A stretch of 64,000 nucleotides of DNA from Chlorokybus atmophyticus (Eukaryota > Plantae > Mesostigma and Chlorokybus algae), in contig RHPI01002533.1 in the NCBI GenBank assembly GCA_009103225.1, positions 1,301,183 through 1,365,182 on the forward strand. Direction: 5' to 3'. The notes beneath the pieces were generated by a model that searched no databases, was not told the origin of the DNA, and saw only the letters and a list, made by a program, of their open reading frames with translations. Position numbers and translations under genes: made by a program. Below are positions 1,574 to 47,989 of the stretch, one piece after another (within the stretch, counting starts at the first letter, position 1; each line of letters starts with the position of its first letter).

Positions 1574-2530
1574 TGTCACGCCCACATGGCAGGCAAAAGT
1601 CATTTTCTGTCCCTTACTTATGTGGTAAGTAAGATGAGACTAAGTGGGGACCCACACTACGCAAGCGTGTGTAGTGCTTGTGGGTGTGCTCTCATGTAGG
1701 TCTGCTCTAGAGCCTGTGCGGCCTTGAGCATGATGAACTACACAAGGCATGATGGCAAGCACATAGCTGATCATAGCCGATGAGACATCATGTGATGTAC
1801 AGAGACATATGTGTGCATATGTCCGCATGTGTATGCATGTGTTTGCATATGTGTGCACATGTACACATATGAGTGCATACGCGTGCATGAGAGGTATGTA
1901 CTAGATGTATGCATGTATATGCATGCATGCGCATATGTGTGCATATATGCGCATATGTATGCATAAGGATGCATATGTATGCATGAGTATGATGTCCTAG
2001 GCTAATGTGACCAGCCAAGGGACGTTTACAATGTCCGAGGCTGATGTGTGATCAGTCTTGGGCGTTGAAAGAGGTCCAAGGGCTGATGTGGCAGCCCTAG
2101 ACATGAGTTGTGGTCAACGCAGCCATGACAAGGCATGTAGCCTTGGACTTGGATGTTCTAGGTCGGAGAGCAGCAAAGAGAGGGTATATGAACGGCCTCA
2201 ACATGTGTTGAGGCAGCTCAGCATGTGCATACTCGACTCTTGTGTGTGGGGTGCCTAGTTGAGTTGTTCAAGGGGCTCTCCCTCTCGTCCCATGTGGGGT
2301 GTGATGTCCGTGGCAGCTTTGCACATGTGTGTGAGGAGTGCTTGAGTGTGTGAGTGTGTGGGAGCTGAGCAGAGAGGTTGGTGTCATCCTCTCCTTCCTT
2401 GGTGCGGTGCTGTGACTTCCTCTGCAAGGTACTGCACCAGTGACGCTGGTAGGGCTTCCAGTAGTAAGTCCTTGTGCTTGTGCATAAGTTTGCCAAGCCG
2501 CCCAGCAAGTAAGTGAGTGGTATCGTTACA
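1574..2530. mobile_element. Solo LTR (957 bp), probably Ty3/Gypsy chromovirus-like
   Basis: Starts TGTCACGCCC (1574) and ends TATCGTTACA (2530), giving TG...CA termini and a 6/7 inverted end. Flanked by an identical 5-bp TSD CCATG (1569-1573 and 2531-2535). TATA-like TATATGAA near 2186 and no coding capacity. Confidence 0.88.
1795..1990. repeat. About 10-bp-period alternating purine/pyrimidine repeat (GTNTGCATRT-like) inside the LTR
   Basis: Successive decamers gtgtgcatat, gtccgcatgt, gtatgcatgt, gtttgcatat, gtgtgcacat and so on. Confidence 0.8.
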
Positions 2531-2590
2531 CCATGTATGTTAAGTTGTTTTAATAACAGTTTATACATCGGCAATAAATGCATGCCTGTT

Positions 2591-2710
2591 AAGCTTAGCA
2601 GAAACTTTGTATACGGTCAAACATGTTGTCTCAGATAATCTTCATTAACAACATATGCTAACTTGCTAAGCTTTGCAAGAACTTTACATATGGTCAAACA
2701 CGTTTTGTCA
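2591..2710. repeat. Degenerate direct duplication, about 40-bp unit at 78-bp spacing
   Basis: aagcttagcagaaactttgtatacggtcaaacatgttgtc (2591) versus aagctttgcaagaactttacatatggtcaaacacgttttgtc (2669). Confidence 0.6.
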
Positions 2711-3173
2711 AGTGGCTTTTATTATCAATATATATTAATGCAATATCAAGATGTTTGTATTGTTGTGTGCAACAAATACAATGCACAATATACATATTGT
2801 AATGTACTCATCAACATCATCACAGCAACGAAAACACACTTTGACTGCATAGTGGCCCATGTCTTGCATTCCTAACAAGATTGCCCCATGTTGTTTATAC
2901 GCGCAACTGAATTAACCAGCATTGAAGACTTGTTGACGTGCAAGATCTTGTGCAAACATGGCTTCTCGAACAAAATGTTGCAAGGCTCAGCAATGCTTGT
3001 TCAGTTTCTTTCTTGTGCTTGCATGTTTTGAGAGGGCGTCCGGTGCACAGGGGAGTGGGGGCCAAGGATTGCCAAGAGTGCCTTCAAACTAGTGAAACAT
3101 GTTTGTTTACTAGTCATGAAGGACTTGGCTGCCAGAGTGTCCTGCTTTGATAAGTTGCCTAATTGAAGTGCCG

Positions 3174-4676
3174 CTACTCTTTCATCAGGCTAACCATGTC
3201 CGCAATCTCCGTGGGGCTTTTACCGCTTGTCTGCAGAACGAAACGACGTATAATACAAACAAAAACATAGCCAAGCTGCCCGCATGCATGCAGAACAGTG
3301 CTGTCCGTGATAAAGCAACAACTGGCATTACCCGGATGAAAGACGGTCCAAACTTGCCCTTGTCGATCTCTGGCTCGCCCTTAACGACGCACCTAACAGA
3401 GACAACAACTTGCAACTGGTTGGGTTGAGGGCAAACGAATCCATTTCGTGTGATTGCTGCTAAGTGATTTGTGAGTGCCTGCCTGCAACTGCATTGGGCA
3501 GCAGCGTCAATTGAACACATGCATTGCGACTCAAGTACCTCCAATGTGTGCTTGCACTTGTGCGTTGGGCTTTCTGCAATGTCACAGTGATAATGCGCTC
3601 GGTACCACGGGTTTCTGCACGCAGTTGTGTGGTCAGGTGCATGCTGCATGCATTGCAAAATGCACACATTTTGCTGCCTTCCAAACAGCCACAAGTCCGA
3701 TTGCACCACACGCGCAGTTACCAATCTCCCAGGTGGAGTCCTCAGGAAGAACACGTCTGTATAGCTCGCCCTGTCAATTACACAAGCATTGACTTCACAT
3801 AGCACACCTCATGGCATGTCCAGGTTTTACATAAGTGCACCAGCAAATGCTGAACACACAAGCATGCACGGCAGGCAAGCGTGAGCCTCCAGGAGCTCAC
3901 AGTGATTGAAGCAGCTGTTGTGTACCTGCAGCACTGGCTTGTCGCTGCCGCTAAGGGAAATACGGAACTGCTCCGAGGCAATCTTGCAGTCTACATCCTT
4001 GCTGCGCGTGCCTGCAAGTTGAAGAGCGGTGACGGAGTGCATAAACAGCTGGATGGGAGTGACTGTGCGGCTGTCTCTCTTGCAGCTTTGCAAACACGCT
4101 GCCAACACATACATCCACACCACACCTGCTGCACAGGGAATCTCAACAATGACCTCCTCCTCTGTCTGGCCCCACTGGTAGCGATCGGTCTTGCCTGCGT
4201 ATGCTCACGGTCGCCCCGCTATCAAACACAAACGCATGTGCTGCTGGATGCCGACTGCTTGTTGTGATGGTGCTGGTGCTGGTGCTGGTTGTTGAAGACG
4301 ACAACAGGTGCAAGACTGCTAGCACTGACTGCATTTGATCGACAGCTGTTGGCAAGGGGAGCAACCAGCATAGCCTTACCTCCAAACGCCATTGGGTCCG
4401 TGATCCCATTGACACTCTGCTTGGCAATGTCGTTGAAGTCCGAAGCAGCCAAGGCAGAGTCCTGCATTGCACTCACACTACTCAATCGTACATACACATG
4501 GTGCAGGTGTTGCTGGGTGGTTATAGTGTCAATTGTATTGTGGTGTGGGACAGCCATGCCTTGGAGGTGGGTTGCCTGCGCTGCCACCATGACCAAGACA
4601 GCCATATCAGCACACCAAGCACGGTGGTGAAGGCCGCCCTGCCCGCCGCCCACCACCACTCGGCCGCCTGCTCCAT
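3174..4676 (-). CDS. NudC-like CS (p23/HSP20-like) domain protein with an N-terminal transmembrane segment, 7 exons
   Basis: Spliced product MEQAAEWWWAAGRAAFTTVLGVLIWLSWSWWQRRQPTSK/DSALAASDF...KTDRYQWGQTEEEVIVEIPCAAGTRSKDVDCKIASEQFRISLSGSDKPVLQGELYRRVLPEDSTWEIE...VTLQK...HWRCVVKGEPEID...MKE*. The Y-W-QT-EV, G-L, ESTWEI and W-VV-GEPEID motifs are NudC-type. Confidence 0.85.
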
Positions 4677-15683: not shown

Positions 15684-18250
15684 ATGGAGACCCCCCTGTT
15701 GACAAGCAGTAACGGCAGTAACGACGACGGCAAAGGCAGGAGCCCAGGCAGCAATGCCTGCGGCAGCGGTGTCAGCCCGGAGCCGCTCCCGTCTTGCGCG
15801 CGCGACCAAGCTATCAGCGTGTCTCACGTCCCCTCCGCTGCCCACCTCGCGCAGGGCGCAATGCTCTCTCGCTGCCTGTCGCGTGCTGATGGTAAGTGCA
15901 ACATCACACGTGCATGCTACCGCAGGCTGGTAGCCGCTTTGTGACGGGAAGCTTTTTTTGTTACGTCATGCGCCCAACAGCGTGCAACCGCTCTCTTATG
16001 GCCAGTGAAGTGAAATCTTTTGCAATATTTGGCAAAGCGATGTAAGGTGCAGAGAGGCATACGCTGCTTGTGTCATAAATTGTTTCCACGTGTTGTTTCA
16101 GAGCAAACTGTGATAGGCCTGTGTAGTGATCGTTTCCAATCTTTTCTCTTCCTAACACACGAAGGCACTTAGAGCTAGCAAGTGACCAGTTTCTGAATGC
16201 AAACTTATGGTATACCGCTGCGTTGATGTTGTTCTTCAACAGCAAAGTGTAAGCCTTTCATTTGAGCTGGAAGTGTTGGCCGCAAGGTTTCTTGTTCTAT
16301 TTTGTTGTGCGCGTACTCACAATGCCTTTGCATGCTGATTGCCAGCTGCTTGTTGCCCTTGTCGCAGACCTTTGGTAGTGACTTTGTTGTATTACTGCCG
16401 GTGCAGGTCTAGGTGCTGACGGTGCAGAGCACACGTGTTACTTGTCTGAGCTTGGTGAGACAGAAGAGACAGCAAAACAGCGGTCAAAACTCGTGACCGC
16501 TGTAGTCCTGTGTTTCATATTCATCATCGCTGAGGTGGTTGGTGGTAAGGAGATTACCAACTTGGGATGTCGTGGCGCACATGCAATTGCAGCTGACAGT
16601 TGAGTTGTCGCAGGTATTCTGGCGAACAGTCTTGCAATAATAACGGATGCGGCTCATCTTTTGTCGGATGTTGCAGGTACAATTTGGTCGGCAGCATGCT
16701 TGTCTGTGCCACACGGGGCACTTATACACATTCTTTGTGCAGCCTTTGCGATCTCATTGTTTGCGCTGTGGGCCTCTACTTTGAAGGCCACTCCTAAACA
16801 TTCATACGGGTTTCACCGCCTGGAGATTCTTGGAGCACTTGTGTCTATACTGCTCATCTGGATGCTGACCGGCGTGCTGATTTATGAGGCCAGTCAGAGG
16901 TACAAACTATTCAGCGTCAGTTGTTTGGGCTGCTTTGCAGCTTATCCGACCAGGTGTATGCCTTCTACTGTAACACTAACGCTGTGCTCAGGCTTCAGCA
17001 CGGCGGTGATGTTGATGGCCGCACCATGACCATTGTAGCCATTTGTGGTGTTTTGGTCAACATCTGCCTGGTGACACTTCTGCACGATCACGGGCACGGG
17101 CATGCGCACGGACACTCACATGGGCACGCGCACGGGCATGAGCATGGGAGTGGCCATGCCCACGGACATGGGCATGAGCATAGCAATGGACATGGCTCGG
17201 GACACCCACCTGCTCGTGGTCATGCGCATGAGCATGACGCTATCGACCATGCACTTACCGATTCAGATGAAGAGGAGCACAGCCACTGCCATGGTAAGCT
17301 GCACTGTTGGCAGGGAAGTATAATAGGTCGCTAACAGCCCTATAATCTTGTTCATTTGGCTGTTGCAGATGAAGAAGAGGGCTTGGTGAATTTGAAGAAG
17401 CACGCACGCACGCAGGACGAAACGGAGCGACAGTCTCGTAATATAAACATGCGCGGCGCCTTTCTGCATGCCATTGGTGACCTGGTGCAGAGCATTGGCG
17501 TCGCCATTGCTGGCATAGCAATTTGGATACGACCTGACTGGTAAGTTAAGTTTTGAATGTTGTTATGTGTGCATCGCATGTGGTGAAGCAGGAAATACAT
17601 CCACTGACGATATTCCTGGGCGTTTGCAGGAAGATAGCAGATCCGATTTGCACGTACATATTTTCCATACTTGTGCTTGCCACTACCCTGAACATGTTAC
17701 GAGACATCACGGATGTTCTTATGGAGCGCACTCCGCGAGGCTTGGATGCAGAAAAGGTGAGTGCTTGCTGCGGTTCTCATAAGAGAACTTTCGTGGAGAC
17801 TACATCCGTCAACTGATAGTAGCCACTATCAAGTCACATTCACCCCGCATCATCAATGCTTGTGTGGCAATTGCAGTGTCTGTGGCAACCATTACGCACA
17901 GTCAAGGTGCTGATGGGTTGTTGTATGCTAGGTTCGTGAAGGTCTCAAGCGTATTGAGGATGTTGTTGATGTGCATGAGCTACACATTTGGTCAATCACG
18001 ATGGGCAAGGTGAGTCGTGTTCTCAGCTTGGTTGATGGTATGTCTGCCTGACTTGGTGTTCGCACAGCAGGCTCACACTACCCACCCTTGGCAGGTGCTG
18101 CTTGCAGTGCATATTTTGACCACATCCGATGCGAACACTGACGAGGTGTTGTCAAATGCTCACAAGTATTGCGAAACCGCACATGGCATTAGCCATGTGA
18201 CCATACAGGTTGAACGCATTGATGGCTTCCGAAGTGGGCATCATCATTAG
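15684..18250 (+). CDS. MTP1: Cation diffusion facilitator Zn transporter with a His-rich loop (MTP1/ZAT-type), about 9 exons
   Basis: [32 protein letters not shown], long (HG)n loop, [40 protein letters not shown] and HVTIQVE. Confidence 0.95.
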
Positions 18251-19262
18251 ACTTCCAACCCTGCGCTGAGGTGGGGTTGCATAACATGTATACTGTTGCC
18301 GGTGGCACAGGCTGCCGCAAACCAAACAGCAGTATAACAGCAAGCTCATAGCCACCACTCAGGCTGCAAGGTGTTTTTTTGCGTGCATTCTGGTCAATTC
18401 TTCGTTGTCATATTCAAATTGTTGTCAGATACTGTGTTCTCAGTTGTGATGTGCACATGAAATTTTCTGCACTGCATGTGGACAGCTGGCGCGAGTTGTG
18501 CTGTGCCGTACCGCCAACACCAACATTAGCAGAGTATGTGCTGTATCAGCCTTATACATGCACAAGTACGCAAGTTTCATGTTTTCAACTCCTGAATATG
18601 GACATCGTGAGTTGTGACGAAGTTGTGCACAGAGCTTCATAACAGCAAGTTGGCATGAGATCAAATGCATAACAGACACACGTGATGCAGCTTGCATCTT
18701 TTGTACATAGATGCCCAAGGTTGAGGCAGCATGGCTGAAATTTTGGCAACCAGTTTTAGGTCTGCAACAAGTCTGTTTTGTATGTAATCTGTTGTGTACA
18801 GGATATGCGCGAGACAATTGGAGACATGCATGACGTCAAACAGCATAGCATACCAACCAGCATGCAAACTCAGTCACATACACCACCACCGGGCTATTCT
18901 TACTGCCTGTTTACCTACCACACTACCCTACTCTAGACCTCCCCGTTAGGCATGCATACATGCGTATTGTTGGTTAATTACCTGTGCAACACACGAGCTG
19001 AATGTTTGGGTTAGTTAGTGTTTCCGAGCTGTATACCAACACTACATTGAACATAAGCACACATTTACAACCGTGTTCAACTGTAGCCTGTGCATACAGC
19101 AGTAATCATTCCGGTCACAAGGGCATAGAACAGTGCAGTGCATGACAAACTTGCTTGTCTGCCAGTTCACAGACCCGCAAAGCGGCAATTTGACAACTCT
19201 GCCACTGCTAAAAACAATACAACAAGAGAAAGAATGCTGTTGTGTGGCAACCCATCGACAAG

Positions 19263-30840: not shown

Positions 30841-33319
30841 TCACTTGACTGCATTGGTCGGTTTGAACCACTTGGTCAAACCCTTCTTTTTCGGCAAGGG
30901 AAACATCTCCTTGATCGGAGTGAAGGTGCGTCTGTGTATCTCCACAGGACCAAACACTTTTAAGGAGGCTACGTGTGCAGCTGTGGGATAACCCTTGTGG
31001 AGACCGAACCCATAGTTAGGCCATTTCCTGTAATCAAATGACAAAAGCGATGAACACAAAGCACTGCGAGTTGCAGGTAAGTCGGATATCATGTCAGCAC
31101 CTGTCGTATTCTCTCATGATGCGGTCTCGGGTCACCTTGGCAAAGATTGAAGCGGCAGCAATCGCCAGACACTTGGAATCACCCTACAACAGCGTAAGGT
31201 TGACCATCAGCTAAGTGTCATAGCAGTTGGGGACAAATGAGACTTCGCACTGCAATATGTTTGTTGACTACCTTAATGACAGCCGCTGATCTGGAAGCGC
31301 TTATGCCTGAAGGAACGCGATTGCCATCGACCAAGACGTAATCGGGTTCCTTGCCAAGGCTGTCTCTCAACTTGTGTACAGCCTCCTGCATGGCCGTCAT
31401 AGTAGCCTGCAAGTGCCAACTGCATATGGCGCATGCGCGGTTGAAGTGTTTCACAAGTCAGGATCAGATATGACTTTACACACCTGCAGGATGTTAATGT
31501 CATCAATCTTCTGCGCGTCCACAATTGACACCTGCAGCAACATGCAAGACTTTTAGCATTGGCATGGCGTTCATTCCAACAGGACAGTCCCCCTCGTGCA
31601 TGGTTTGAGAGGCACGACGGCAGATGCGACGACTGTATGCATGTGCATGTGTCCTGTGCGCCACGTGCAAGCCCACAACTGTTGTTGGAACGCACTTACT
31701 GCATAGTACACGCCTGATGTCGACGCCAGAGTGTCGTGCAGCCGTTCACGGTCTGCCTCCGTCATCTTCTTGCTGTCATTGATTCCTGCATCAAGTAACC
31801 TCAAGACCTCCGGCCATGCTCACTGAGTCCAGCAGAGCATGCACAAGTCGCACGATAACTCAAGGTGTAAGTATATGTGTGTGAGGGTGGAGTATAAGCT
31901 GACTGCGGGGGCAATCCTGTTTGGCTCACCTTCAATTGCTACAGATGGGTCCAACACGCATGCGGCAGCCACAACTGGCCCAGCCAATGGACCACGCCCG
32001 GCTTCGTCGATGCCAGCCACATGACTATACCCCTGCGCCCACAACTCTGCCTGGCAAGAACAAACTGTCACCATAGCCTTGTTGCTTGCGCAAGAAGCAA
32101 GCAACAACGACATTTGCTATGCAAACAAGCAAACAAGGGAGATTCTCTACATGTCGTACTTGATGTTAGTGACATTGACAACACCCAGATCGGCTGCGCT
32201 CATGAGGAAATGCTCGCTAACCTGGTCGACTTGCCAGTGATCACCGCAACGATCGCATAGTGTCGCAATGCAAGATAACTCGCATTGCAAAGTATGAGCC
32301 ATCGGTCCAGGCGTTCAGCAAACACGACAAGGTTACCAAGGATCCTTGTAAAAGCAGCTGAGCTGGGAGTTGTCATCTTCACCAACACGCAGGTGCAAAA
32401 TGCATAAAGACAATTCACGCCAAGCAACCAGTCGTGAACAGCTTCGCCGTGCGTCATCATGACATACACCAGTCGTCAAGCAGCAACAGCAAAGCCAGCT
32501 GGCCACTGACCTCCATCTCGCGTGTGGGGCCACCTGTCAGCACGCGTCTGCGCTTGACAGGGCTGCGCACTGCGTTGGTGGGCGACACTCCCTCCGTTGC
32601 ACGCTCCACTGCACCAACATCTTGGCTCACACGGTCCAATGCCACGGTTGCAAGCAACGCAGTGGGTTCTTCTTTGTTTGCTCTAGCCCTTGTGCGCTTT
32701 GGCTGTGTTTTAGCAGGCGTCGGAATGGAGGAAGATGGTTCTACGCACCACAAGTGAGACAAGCTGCTCGCCAAGCTAGCAGCTGGAATTGCAAGGATGA
32801 CAAGTGCATGCAACCGCAACAGTGCCCCTTGCTGCTGAATAGCAGTAAGGGGCACGCGTGTGGGCGGCTGGCCCCTGCATGTCACCTCAAACATTGCTTG
32901 CTGAACTACTCGGAGACAGATCCGAGTAGTTCAGCAACAGTGTGAAACCGAAGAGATTGCCTCCTCGCAAACATGGCATGCAACCAAGCGGAAGTAACAA
33001 TCACTTGCATTGCTTGAGGTGACAACCAAGACAAACATAAGCTTCGTGTGCTGGCACGATCAAATCTGCGACATGAAAGCATGCACAAAACAAGCTTGCA
33101 CTCTTGAGGACTGCACAAACTCAACTCACCTCCGGCTTGTTTGGCCATCACTGCTTTGGCCTTTGGCATGGGGCGAGCTGATTGCAGCTGCTTGGCGGGG
33201 CGGCCAGCGAAAAGCCCATGCACCGCGTTCAACCTTCCAGGCCCACGCCGGCATAGACGGACAGCGACTCCGCCTGCGCCAGCGACGACGCCGCCCACGC
33301 CGCCCAGCACGCCAAGCAT
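30841..33319 (-). CDS. rnhB: Bacterial-type ribonuclease HII with an N-terminal organellar-targeting-like extension, about 8 exons
   Basis: [78 protein letters not shown] and [10 protein letters not shown]. Confidence 0.93.
32887..32948. other. Perfect 17-bp inverted repeat (6-nt loop) in RNase HII intron 1, extendable to about 25 bp
   Basis: TTGCTGAACTACTCGGA (32898-32914), loop GACAGA, TCCGAGTAGTTCAGCAA (32921-32937). The flanks ACATTG/CAGTGT also pair. Confidence 0.9.
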
Positions 33320-44252: not shown

Positions 44253-47200
44253 ATGGCGGAGGTAAAGCGCAAGCGGCCCAGGCGCAAGCCTGGCCAAGGG
44301 GTCGGGGACGGGGGAGCAGCTCCCCTCAAGAAGCTTAGGAAGCAGGAGTTATCGGAGCCGGAGGCTCGCTTGCTGGAGGAGGACGAGGATGCCGCTGGGC
44401 CGCCCGCGGCCTCTGCCGCTGCGGTGGAGGAGGCCTCCCCGCCCCCGGAGAAGCGCCAGCCTGCCGGCAATGCTGCGGACCATGATCAAGAACAGGGACG
44501 GCCCTCCAGGAATGGCAAGAACGTGGCGTTCGGCGTGGAGGTGGAGCGACGCATGGCGGTAGTCAGCGGGATCATGAGCCAGAGGGGCTTTGATACTCTG
44601 CAGCTGTCGCAGCAGACGCAGGTGTGGTAGACAGCCATCGTCTTGCACAATCGCCATGCATGCTGGTTTTGTAATGCGGCTGTCGGGCTCTTTGCCACGC
44701 ATTCCACTGTTCGTTGCAAGAGCCTATGTCATGTAAGGCGCATGTAAGCCAATTGACGCCAGTTCGTTTAGGACTGTGCAGTTGCATCATTTCATTCTGT
44801 TAGAATGGAGTGAACTGTCTGTAGTCGTCCCATTTCAAATCAATGCAGTTATTGTCGGCACTAAAGTTACAGGCACATTGCTTAGTATGCTTCAGTGTGG
44901 TAAGCGTCGTGCAGCCACCAAACGTTTGTTTGCAATGCAGGATGCGGTCAAAGACATGGGCTTCACGCACATGACTGAAGTGCAGGCGCGCACAATACCA
45001 GCGTTGATGCAGGGCAGAGACTTGTTGGGTGCGGCCAGGACAGGGTCCGGTAAGACCCTGGCGTTTCTCATACCAAGCCTAGAGCTGCTGTACAATGTCA
45101 AGTTCATGCCGCGCAATGGGACTGGGGTCATCATCATCTCTCCAACGCGAGAGCTTGCTCTGCAGGTGAGACATAGGCAGGGTTAACTTCTTGCACGTGT
45201 TCTTATCCACAGCTTGCCCGCATTATACCCTGCCTGACACAATGTTTTGCAGCCAAACACTCATGCATGCGCATGGCAATCACTCCTAAAACAGATTTGC
45301 CTTGTTCTTGTGTCTACAGATATATGGTGTCGCACGTGATTTGTTCAAGTATCACAATCAAACTCATGGCATTGTCATGGGTGGTGCAAATCGTCGTACG
45401 GAAGCCGAAAAGCTTGTGAAGGGTGTCAACCTACTAGTTGCAACTCCGGGACGCTTGCTGGACCATTTGCAAAACACAAAGAACTTTATTTTCAAGAACC
45501 TCCAAGTGAGTATGCATGCTATTTAGTTCTGCAAGCTGTGGACTGGTGCTTACAGTGAACCGGTATTGCAGTGCTTGGTGATCGATGAAGCAGATCGGAT
45601 TTTGGAGATTGGGTTTGAGGAAGAGATGAGGCAGATTATCAAGTTGCTACCCAAGGTTATTGACAACTCGTATCCTTGTGCAAGCAGCACGCACGTTCAC
45701 ACACATTGGGTGCTTACCTTTGTGCTATGCTGCGCAGGAGCGTCAAACCATGCTATTCTCCGCCACCCAAACTACCAAAGTGGAGGACCTCGCGCGCATC
45801 TCTTTCAAGAAAGCGCCGTTGTATGTGGGTGTGGATGACCAGAGGACTACGGTGAGTGCGGGTTTGTATAGTTGTACTGTCCTCCTTGGGGCCAGGCTGC
45901 TCTTAGTACTTGGTACTTAGTACTTTCAGCTCGGTATTATTGCTTAGTCCGCGCCTGCGCTGCCCATCGCTAGAGGGGCCCAGCTAGCCTCCACACTGGT
46001 CCTCGTAGATACCATGGGCAGAGCATTGCATACTGCTTGGTCTGGCCCGCTTGTTTACCACACGGGTCAGCCACTCTAGCATGCAACACTGCCGCAAGCT
46101 GCAGGCACTTCTTCACTGTCGCACTGTGCCACTTTGAATCTGATCGCCCGCTCTGTACTTCAGGCCACGGTTGAAGGACTGGAGCAGGGTTATTGCGTTG
46201 TGCCTAGTGAGAAGCGGTTCCTGCTGCTGTTCACATTCCTTAAGCGCAATCTGAAGAAGAAGGTACCCACATACTCTGTTGAATAACTGTTGTGCTCTCT
46301 CTAACTCTGCAGCTGGCGTAGTTGCCCACAGACTGAGTACACAGGAGCGTCGTTGTACAGTGTGTTCATATTCTTCGCTGCATGGTTGCGCAGGTGATGG
46401 TATTTTTCTCCTCTTGCAACGCCGTCAAGTTTCATGGGGAGTTGCTGAACTATATTGACATCCCTTGCATGGACATTCATGGGAAGCAAAAGCAGCAGAA
46501 GCGCACCTCAACGTTTTTCGAGTTCTGCAGCGCAGATAAGGGCATTCTGTTGTGTACGGATGTGGCTGCTCGCGGGTTGGACATCCCTGCTGTTGATTGG
46601 ATTATCCAGTACGACCCTCCGGATGACCCAAAGGAGTACATTCATCGTGTGGGGCGAACCGCGCGCGGCGAGGGTAGCCGAGGACGTGCATTGCTGTTCC
46701 TTACACCAGAAGAGATTCCCTTCTTGAAGTACTTGAAGAGTGCCAAGGTGCCGTTGAACGAATATGAGTTTCCAGACAACAAGATCGCCAATGTGCAATC
46801 GCAGCTGGTGGGTGCCACTCTGCGTGGCAGTGTTTGTTGAAATGTCATCATGATTGCTTATGCTGAGAACTTGATTGCAATGTGCTTGCAGGAGCGACTG
46901 ATTGAAAAGAACTACTACCTGTATCAATCTGCCCGCGATGCGTACCGTTCCTACGTTCTTGCATACAACTCCCACCAACTCAAGGAAATTTTCAATGTGC
47001 ATCGGCTTGACCTTCAGGTGTGCAAAGCCCGCCTGTCCTGTGCTGTTCGTTGCTGTTGTTGTATTGCATGCCGACAACAACCCCGCATGCAGGCTGTGGC
47101 GAAATCGTTTGGGTTCTCTGGGCCACCCAAGGTCAATTTGAACTTGGAGAGCAAAGCCAAGAACGCCAGGGTGAAGCCCGCACTGCCCGGTATGAAAGGG

Positions 47201-47302
47201 AGCTCGTGGAAAAAAGGCGTCCGGTCTGGACACGCGTTCAGCGCTGACAACCCGTACGGAAAGAAATCTGCGGGTGATAAACGCCAGTTTGTGCGCATCT
47301 AA
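44253..47302 (+). CDS. HAS1: DEAD-box RNA helicase HAS1/DDX18 (plant RH27/RH51-like), about 10 exons
   Basis: [80 protein letters not shown] and NVHRLDL. Confidence 0.96.
45175..45296 (+). ncRNA. Candidate intronic H/ACA snoRNA in HAS1 intron 2
   Basis: Perfect 9-bp stem AGGCAGGGT/ACCCTGCCT followed by H box ACACAA (45237). A second hairpin is followed by ACA (45291), and its 3' pocket AATCACTCC is complementary to the recalled SSU sequence GGAGUGAUU. Confidence 0.55.
45960..46091 (+). ncRNA. Intronic box H/ACA snoRNA (dual guide) in the HAS1 intron at 45852-46163
   Basis: Hairpin 1 (GCCCAT/ATGGGC lower stem, GGGGCCCAG/CTGGTCCTC upper stem), H box AGAGCA (46020), hairpin 2 (TGCAT/ATGCA and CTGGCCCG/CGGGTCAG), ACA (46086). 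The pockets lie 15 and 14 nt from the boxes and are complementary to conserved LSU and SSU rRNA segments. Confidence 0.88.
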
Positions 47303-47989
47303 GTTGCTTGGTAGTAGTCAACCGGGCCTTTTGAGTGCCGTGCTGTAGCTAGTTATGTCTTAGCATTTATGGTGTGGTGTTGAGTTGCAGCAATTGGGTG
47401 CTGTTTGACTATAATGAGAATTGTTCAGCCAACACATGGTTGGCTAGCAACTTTGTTGGGTAAACCTGTCGTTGGACCAAGGTAGCAGTACAAGGGAAAT
47501 GTGATTTGTAAGCTCGGTACTTTGGGTTGGTTGCGCTGCTAGAATTGCTGTGTTGCCAGCGCCATGTAGCACTCTTGCGCATGGATAGAGATTGTTGATA
47601 TTGTGACTTACATGGTTTGATGCAATCATTAAGAAACTTGAGGCTAGCTTGTGCACCACACGCCAATGCCAGCAGCAGAGACCAAGGTGCAGTACACGCA
47701 CAAGAAGCAAGGCAGGTACGCGTCGTGGTTGATTGGGTAAGCATCGTGTGCAGGTGACTGCTACCAGACACTTTAATGATGCAAGGGAAGGTTGGTATTT
47801 CTGGACATTGAGCGTTTGCTAAGCCTCAGCCTCCTGCTCACGATGGTCACGTCATGTCTCGTGAATCGTCACGCAAGATGTGACGCGTTACCAAGTCACT
47901 GCCTGCCATTTCTTCCGCCACCTGTCTCTCGTCTCGGCGCATTTGCATTGCGCGGGGTTGTTGGCCACCAGCGGGGGGACGGACGCGCC

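Follow-up and report, generated by a model that had tools for sequence, protein, structure and literature searches.

Two uridines of eukaryotic ribosomal RNA (rRNA) that are converted to pseudouridine (Psi) in both yeast and human already have guides assigned to them in these organisms. Yeast 25S U2347 occurs as Um, Psi or Psim and is served by the small nucleolar RNAs (snoRNAs) snR65 and snR9, while yeast 18S Psi766 is guided by snR161 (PMC5699541). Human 28S Psi3830 and 18S Psi822 are modified at 92% and 99%, respectively (PMC6182160), with SNORA62 (E2) and SNORA44 (ACA44) as their guides (PMC6466398). SNORA62 resides in an intron of the ribosomal protein gene RPSA, SNORA48 in EIF4A1, and SNORA56 guides both 28S-1664 and 18S-296 (PMC6466398); box H/ACA guides that serve both subunits from introns of ribosome-related genes are routine. 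In the green lineage, the snoRNA catalogues of Ostreococcus tauri and Chlamydomonas contain H/ACA and C/D guides in introns of protein-coding genes, and expression of snoRNAs from introns is reported there (PMC7671301). Here we describe a predicted box H/ACA snoRNA of 132 nucleotides (nt) in an intron of the ribosome-assembly helicase gene HAS1/DDX18 of the alga Chlorokybus atmophyticus. It lies in a stretch of 64,000 nt (assembly GCA_009103225.1, contig RHPI01002533.1, positions 1,301,183 to 1,365,182 of the forward strand), hereafter the window, to which all coordinates refer. From its sequence and folding, the element is very probably a real intronic snoRNA of ordinary type with two guide pockets. 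In our literature search on Chlorokybus and snoRNAs we found no catalogue, and no description of this RNA, or of HAS1 as a host, came to light.

The architecture conforms to the H/ACA class. Box H sits between the two hairpins (45960-46021 and 46026-46086), and the 3' guide arms begin 15 nt ahead of box H in pocket 1 and 14 nt ahead of ACA in pocket 2, within the 14-16 nt range of the class. Both pockets are bipartite and leave the target uridine and one further nucleotide unpaired. The closing pair of upper hairpin 1, G45975-C46004, directly adjoins both arms of pocket 1 and thereby fixes their register. Three nucleotides separate ACA from the predicted 3' end, and the sequence occurs once in the window. 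An unconstrained minimum free energy fold yields both hairpins (-51.2 kcal/mol, z -2.7). When the arms and boxes were forced to be single-stranded, the canonical fold reached -41.5 kcal/mol compared to -18.5 +/- 4.0 kcal/mol for shuffled sequences (z -5.7), a value that none of the 300 shuffles attained. The minus strand of the locus also folds well because the guide arms are partly self-complementary; it contains no boxes. An earlier sequence-only reading had proposed this hairpin-AGAGCA-hairpin-ACA arrangement inside a HAS1/DDX18 intron, with the same distances from pocket to box; all of its coordinates hold, and spliced RNA contigs show intron 5 to contain the element in sense orientation.

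The principal evidence comes from pocket 1. Its arms form 15 contiguous Watson-Crick pairs (7+8) around the uridine equivalent to yeast 25S U2347, in the large-subunit (LSU) segment UAUCUAC-U-A-UCUAGCG. This extends the 7+7 pairing of the sequence-only reading, as U45967 is able to add one pair, to LSU A2356. In the fixed register, the target uridine scores 15, whereas the second-best uridine in 18S, 5.8S and 25S rRNA scores 6, and none of 1000 shuffled arm sets equals 15. A simpler test of the 7+7 match gave the same picture (0 of 2000 shuffled arms), and with free registers the second-best uridine scores 11.5. The sequence complementarity makes the assignment of pocket 1 to the 25S U2347 equivalent strong.

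Target positions were read on L022 (NZ_SPFO01000032.1), a yeast-like ribosomal DNA (rDNA) unit in a Collinsella assembly and the only reference used after initial motif counts. By Rfam it is a complete eukaryotic unit with an 18S of 1800 nt, 5.8S and 25S. Read on L022, the uridine targeted by pocket 2 is 18S U766, and that of pocket 1 is 25S U2347 once 3 nt are added for the late start of the Rfam model within the 25S of 3396 nt. The numbering given by the sequence-only reading is thus correct on this reference, as is its statement that both uridines are known to be modified, since each is a yeast pseudouridine site (PMC5699541). The position in 25S is confirmed by a published RNase T1 fragment, UCmCC-Psi-AUCUAC-[U/Um/Psi/Psim]-A-Psi-C-Psi-AG, in which the site is numbered 2345, corresponding to 2347 in common numbering (PMC5062969). 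From a constant numbering offset and spacing rather than an alignment, we infer that the pocket 1 target corresponds to human 28S U3830 and Arabidopsis 25S U2337. The run Cm3820-Psi3823-Psi3830-Psi3832 parallels yeast 2337-2340-2347-2349, which identifies Psi3830 as the human equivalent. Human Psim3797, the target of SNORA48, was also considered and is ruled out by the constant offset in Table S2 of PMC8351944. The same table lists Arabidopsis 25S Psi2337 as mapped, with its guide given as 'nd'.

Pocket 2 adds a second, less decisive match. It pairs 8 + 3 + bulge + 4 around the uridine equivalent to yeast 18S U766, in the small-subunit (SSU) segment UUAGAGUG-U-U-CAA(A)GCAG. With the register taken from the upper stem, U766 clearly outscores every other rRNA uridine (13 versus 8.5 for the second-best), and 14 of 1000 shuffles reach 13. 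The sequence-only reading had proposed pairing of pocket 2 around this SSU site with one bulge; the pairing is there and U766 is the top site, but the match rises only moderately above background. The assignment is plausible, and depends on the bulged A and on a U at the target position of the host 18S. By offsets and spacing, again in place of an alignment, yeast 18S U766 would correspond to human 18S U822.

Several results, given here and in the next paragraph, weigh against reading the element as a genuine dual guide. Pocket 2 requires the bulged A, and its score falls to background without it (10.5 versus 10.0 with free registers), leaving only 8+3 contiguous pairs before the bulge. The 18S segment around the target is variable among eukaryotes, some of which have a C at the target position, and Arabidopsis has no Psi mapped at the equivalent of yeast 18S 766 (PMC8351944 Table S3). 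Targets of both pockets were scored on the yeast-like rRNA of L022, and an Rfam scan found no rRNA in the window. Together with the shuffled arms that equal its score, the pocket 2 results could mean that the RNA is a real H/ACA snoRNA whose guiding of rRNA is confined to the 5' pocket, the 3' hairpin being structural, an orphan or directed at another RNA. Against this stand the conservation of the pseudouridine at U766 in yeast and human, the canonical 14 nt between pocket and ACA, and the lead of U766 over all other rRNA sites in the upper-stem register. We consider a single active pocket unlikely, although it retains some weight.

The remaining points would favor a chance look-alike, that is, intron sequence with two hairpins and box-like motifs that is not processed to a stable RNA. 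A loose architecture search (two stems of at least 6 base pairs (bp) with G-U allowed, ANANNA and ACA) on both strands of the window returned 12 matches at about ten loci, compared to a mean of 4.25 matches in block shuffles. Perfect 6+6 matches to rRNA that have a box 13-16 nt away number 62, versus about 55 in shuffles. A bare H/ACA shape, or a 12-nt rRNA match, is common by chance, and each means little alone. The Infernal/Rfam check that had been proposed alongside the sequence-only reading came out negative: no snoRNA family reached the gathering score in the window, and searches with E up to 10 on 45850-46200 and up to 5 on the whole gene returned only noise. No covariance-model match was obtained for SNORA62/E2, snR9, SNORA44, snR161 or the plant snoR families. 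No orthologous intron in which covariation could be examined was found among the fetched HAS1 loci. Finally, two RNA contig sets from the same strain cover HAS1 exons only and give no direct sign of a stable RNA of about 130 nt; this evidence consists of assembled contigs, probably from poly(A) RNA runs, from which ends and levels cannot be read. What distinguishes the locus is that the perfect 15-bp bipartite match of pocket 1, 15 nt from box H, sits in the exact register fixed by the upper stem and is never equalled by shuffled arms; pocket 2 adds to this, and both top targets are known pseudouridine sites. The other nine architecture matches have best rRNA scores of 10-13 with G-U pairs allowed, and none exceeds 13. 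In addition, the length of the element is kept in a diverged relative whose upstream intron is rich in insertions and deletions (see below). A chance origin is therefore very improbable in our estimate.

H/ACA small Cajal body RNAs (scaRNAs) share the same fold, and our target scan covered rRNA, whereas such RNAs may be aimed at small nuclear RNAs (snRNAs). The CAB box (UGAG) is absent from both apical loops (45984-45995 and 46050-46062), which argues against a scaRNA, and rRNA matches best explain both pockets. That the element is a scaRNA, or an H/ACA RNA aimed at a non-rRNA target such as an snRNA, is extremely unlikely.

The predicted RNA shares with yeast snR9 and human SNORA62 its class and the target uridine of pocket 1 (PMC5062969, PMC6466398) and, with SNORA62, an intronic location. 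It differs from both in its host gene and has no detectable sequence or structure homology to them (no Rfam match at E up to 10). The second target also differs, being 25S Psi2340 for snR9 and 28S 3832 for SNORA62, whereas that of the predicted RNA is in 18S rRNA. Conversely, snR161 and SNORA44 have the target predicted for pocket 2 (PMC5699541, PMC6466398). They pair the 766/822 site with 18S Psi632/686, while the predicted RNA pairs it with an LSU site; neither gave an Rfam match, and the bulged A is needed in the pairing of the predicted RNA. The host of SNORA44 is the non-coding SNHG12, in contrast to the protein-coding HAS1/DDX18. Judged by its predicted pairings, it combines LSU 2347 with SSU 766, which neither the yeast nor the human guides for these sites do.

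The exon structure of the host gene was derived from spliced RNA contigs of two studies, and protein searches were run exon by exon. Exon 7 matches yeast Has1 with an E-value of 4.6e-74 and human DDX18 with 1.4e-67 in a phmmer search of the PDB, compared to 6.7e-24 for the best other helicase, and Pfam detects DEAD, Helicase_C and CTE_SPB4 domains. By sequence similarity, the host is HAS1/DDX18 rather than a paralogue. The snoRNA begins 108 nt past the 5' splice site of intron 5 and ends 72 nt ahead of the 3' splice site. Four of the eight introns measure 66-84 nt, and the greater length of intron 5 may be owed in part to the embedded RNA. Coordinates of the gene and of the elements of the predicted RNA are given in Table 1.

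Table 1. Elements of the predicted snoRNA and of its host gene, in window coordinates.
Feature	Position	Strand	Evidence
Predicted box H/ACA snoRNA, 132 nt, two hairpins	45960-46091	+	sequence, folding
Basal stem 1, 5' strand; partner 46014-46021; 8 perfect Watson-Crick bp	45960-45967	+	sequence, constrained fold
Pocket 1, 5' guide arm CGCUAGA; pairs LSU 2349-2355	45968-45974	+	target scan
Upper hairpin 1; 8 bp, one 1x1 mismatch	45975-46004	+	constrained fold
Pocket 1, 3' guide arm GUAGAUA; pairs LSU 2340-2346	46005-46011	+	target scan
Basal stem 1, 3' strand; final 2 nt overlap box H	46014-46021	+	sequence, constrained fold
Box H, AGAGCA, fits ANANNA, at hinge	46020-46025	+	sequence
Basal stem 2, 5' strand; partner 46081-46086; 6 perfect bp	46026-46031	+	sequence, constrained fold
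Pocket 2, 5' guide arm CUGCUUG; pairs SSU 768-770 and 772-775, A771 bulged	46033-46039	+	target scan
Upper hairpin 2; 8 bp including one G-U	46042-46070	+	constrained fold
Pocket 2, 3' guide arm CACUCUAG; pairs SSU 758-765, 8 bp with one G-U	46072-46079	+	target scan
Basal stem 2, 3' strand	46081-46086	+	sequence, constrained fold
Box ACA, directly after stem 2	46086-46088	+	sequence
HAS1/DDX18 coding region, nine exons, eight GT..AG introns	44253-47302	+	spliced RNA contigs X1, X2; Pfam; PDB phmmer; open reading frames (ORFs)
HAS1/DDX18 introns 1-8	44622-44940, 45166-45319, 45506-45571, 45656-45737, 45852-46163, 46263-46393, 46808-46891, 47018-47092	+	RNA contigs
Intron 5, 312 nt, host of the snoRNA in sense	45852-46163	+	joint 45850>46163 (cut +1, GT..AG) in three RNA contigs

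A further RNA run, X4, carries the same species label, and its HAS1 mRNA contains many substitutions, which suggests that two species or strains share one name. A 263-nt contig of this run, with a depth of 5 compared to 58 for the mRNA, extends from the end of exon 5 through intron 5 to 46099, 8 nt past the predicted 3' end of the snoRNA. Ten of the 11 listed indels of X4 fall at 45877-45922, within the 108 nt upstream of the snoRNA. The remaining one, at 46058 in the loop that caps hairpin 2, is the only one within the 132-nt element (Fisher p 0.003). This pattern suggests, short of proof, that the snoRNA is under constraint. Elsewhere, the X4 HAS1 mRNA (window 44256-47320) lacks 6 nt at 44413 and carries 3 extra nt at 44510, and the start of exon 4 differs, with 12 other letters and the joint 45505>45584.

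The following steps would lead from the host gene to the modified sites. The snoRNA would be transcribed within intron 5 of HAS1/DDX18. If it follows the route of other intronic snoRNAs, splicing and debranching would free it, exonucleases would trim it, and bound Cbf5/dyskerin, Nop10, Nhp2 and Gar1 would set the RNA ends. The RNA would accumulate as a ribonucleoprotein (RNP) in the host organism. The 5' pocket would then pair with LSU rRNA on either side of the 25S U2347 equivalent and present this uridine for isomerisation to pseudouridine. The 3' pocket would probably act likewise on the equivalent of SSU 18S U766 (human U822).

The finding extends the sparse snoRNA inventory of an early-branching genome of the green lineage by one well-supported H/ACA guide, and it names candidate guides for two uridines that both yeast and human convert to pseudouridine. 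It leaves the known ways in which snoRNAs function and are hosted unchanged, being a new example of a well-known kind of RNA. A lead arises for Arabidopsis 25S Psi2337, since a guide from a streptophyte alga could seed a search for the one acting there. A more far-reaching reading would hold that the pairing of guide and host is functional and not incidental and, separately, that this RNA represents the streptophyte guide for Arabidopsis 25S Psi2337; we regard the two propositions taken jointly as very improbable. Were the pairing functional, HAS1 output could be coupled to production of the H/ACA RNP or to its assembly on the intron during transcription. A pre-ribosome helicase and a modifying guide would then be made in a fixed ratio, or would regulate each other's splicing.

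The search for related loci yielded 80 metagenome HAS1 loci with 81-86% amino-acid identity in exon 7, and blastn and pattern scans revealed no snoRNA homologue in any of them. Neither an exhaustive protein search nor a word search returned the genome of a near relative; the best protein match is 90% identical and spans the exon 7/8 junction, and therefore looks like cDNA. Land plants are among the best named protein matches, which fits a streptophyte. L168 and L169 likewise resemble cDNA, whereas L170 and L171 have kept intron 6 and lack intron 5. Apparent matches to an SSU-766 guide in L156-L167 proved to be located in coding sequence. In L165, the one inspected, HAS1 is intronless (ORF 1726-3747).

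None of the HAS1 introns contains a convincing pair of C and D boxes. Intron 1 (44622-44940, 319 nt) and intron 6 (46263-46393, 131 nt) are far longer than the introns of 66-84 nt, and neither holds a convincing C/D or H/ACA architecture. Intron 2 (45166-45319) contains a second H/ACA-like candidate at 45175-45296 (+), with a basal stem of 7-9 bp, a possible H box ACACAA, a small second hairpin and an ACA. As an rRNA guide this candidate was rejected (fold z -0.96; best rRNA target 10.5, at background level), and it may be an orphan, be aimed at another RNA or be no snoRNA. Further loose H/ACA-like architectures in the window include 18223-18340 (+), 31169-31282 (+), 24130-23995 (-) and six more. 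None lies above the free-register rRNA background of 10-13, and they are probably mostly due to chance.

The search for rRNA references also covered viral contigs and prokaryotic assemblies. Viral contigs gave three chance matches to an LSU 16-mer, none of them with rRNA, and no match to an SSU 20-mer. A scan of prokaryotic assemblies with an LSU 24-mer matched more than 84 contigs in assemblies labeled as bacteria or metagenome-assembled genomes; several of these contigs have the layout of L022, and some that are rich in G+C may be rDNA of animals or human. Roughly a dozen actinomycete assemblies labeled as NPDC strains share a contig of 7682 nt. These rDNA contigs look like eukaryotic contamination of reference prokaryote genomes.

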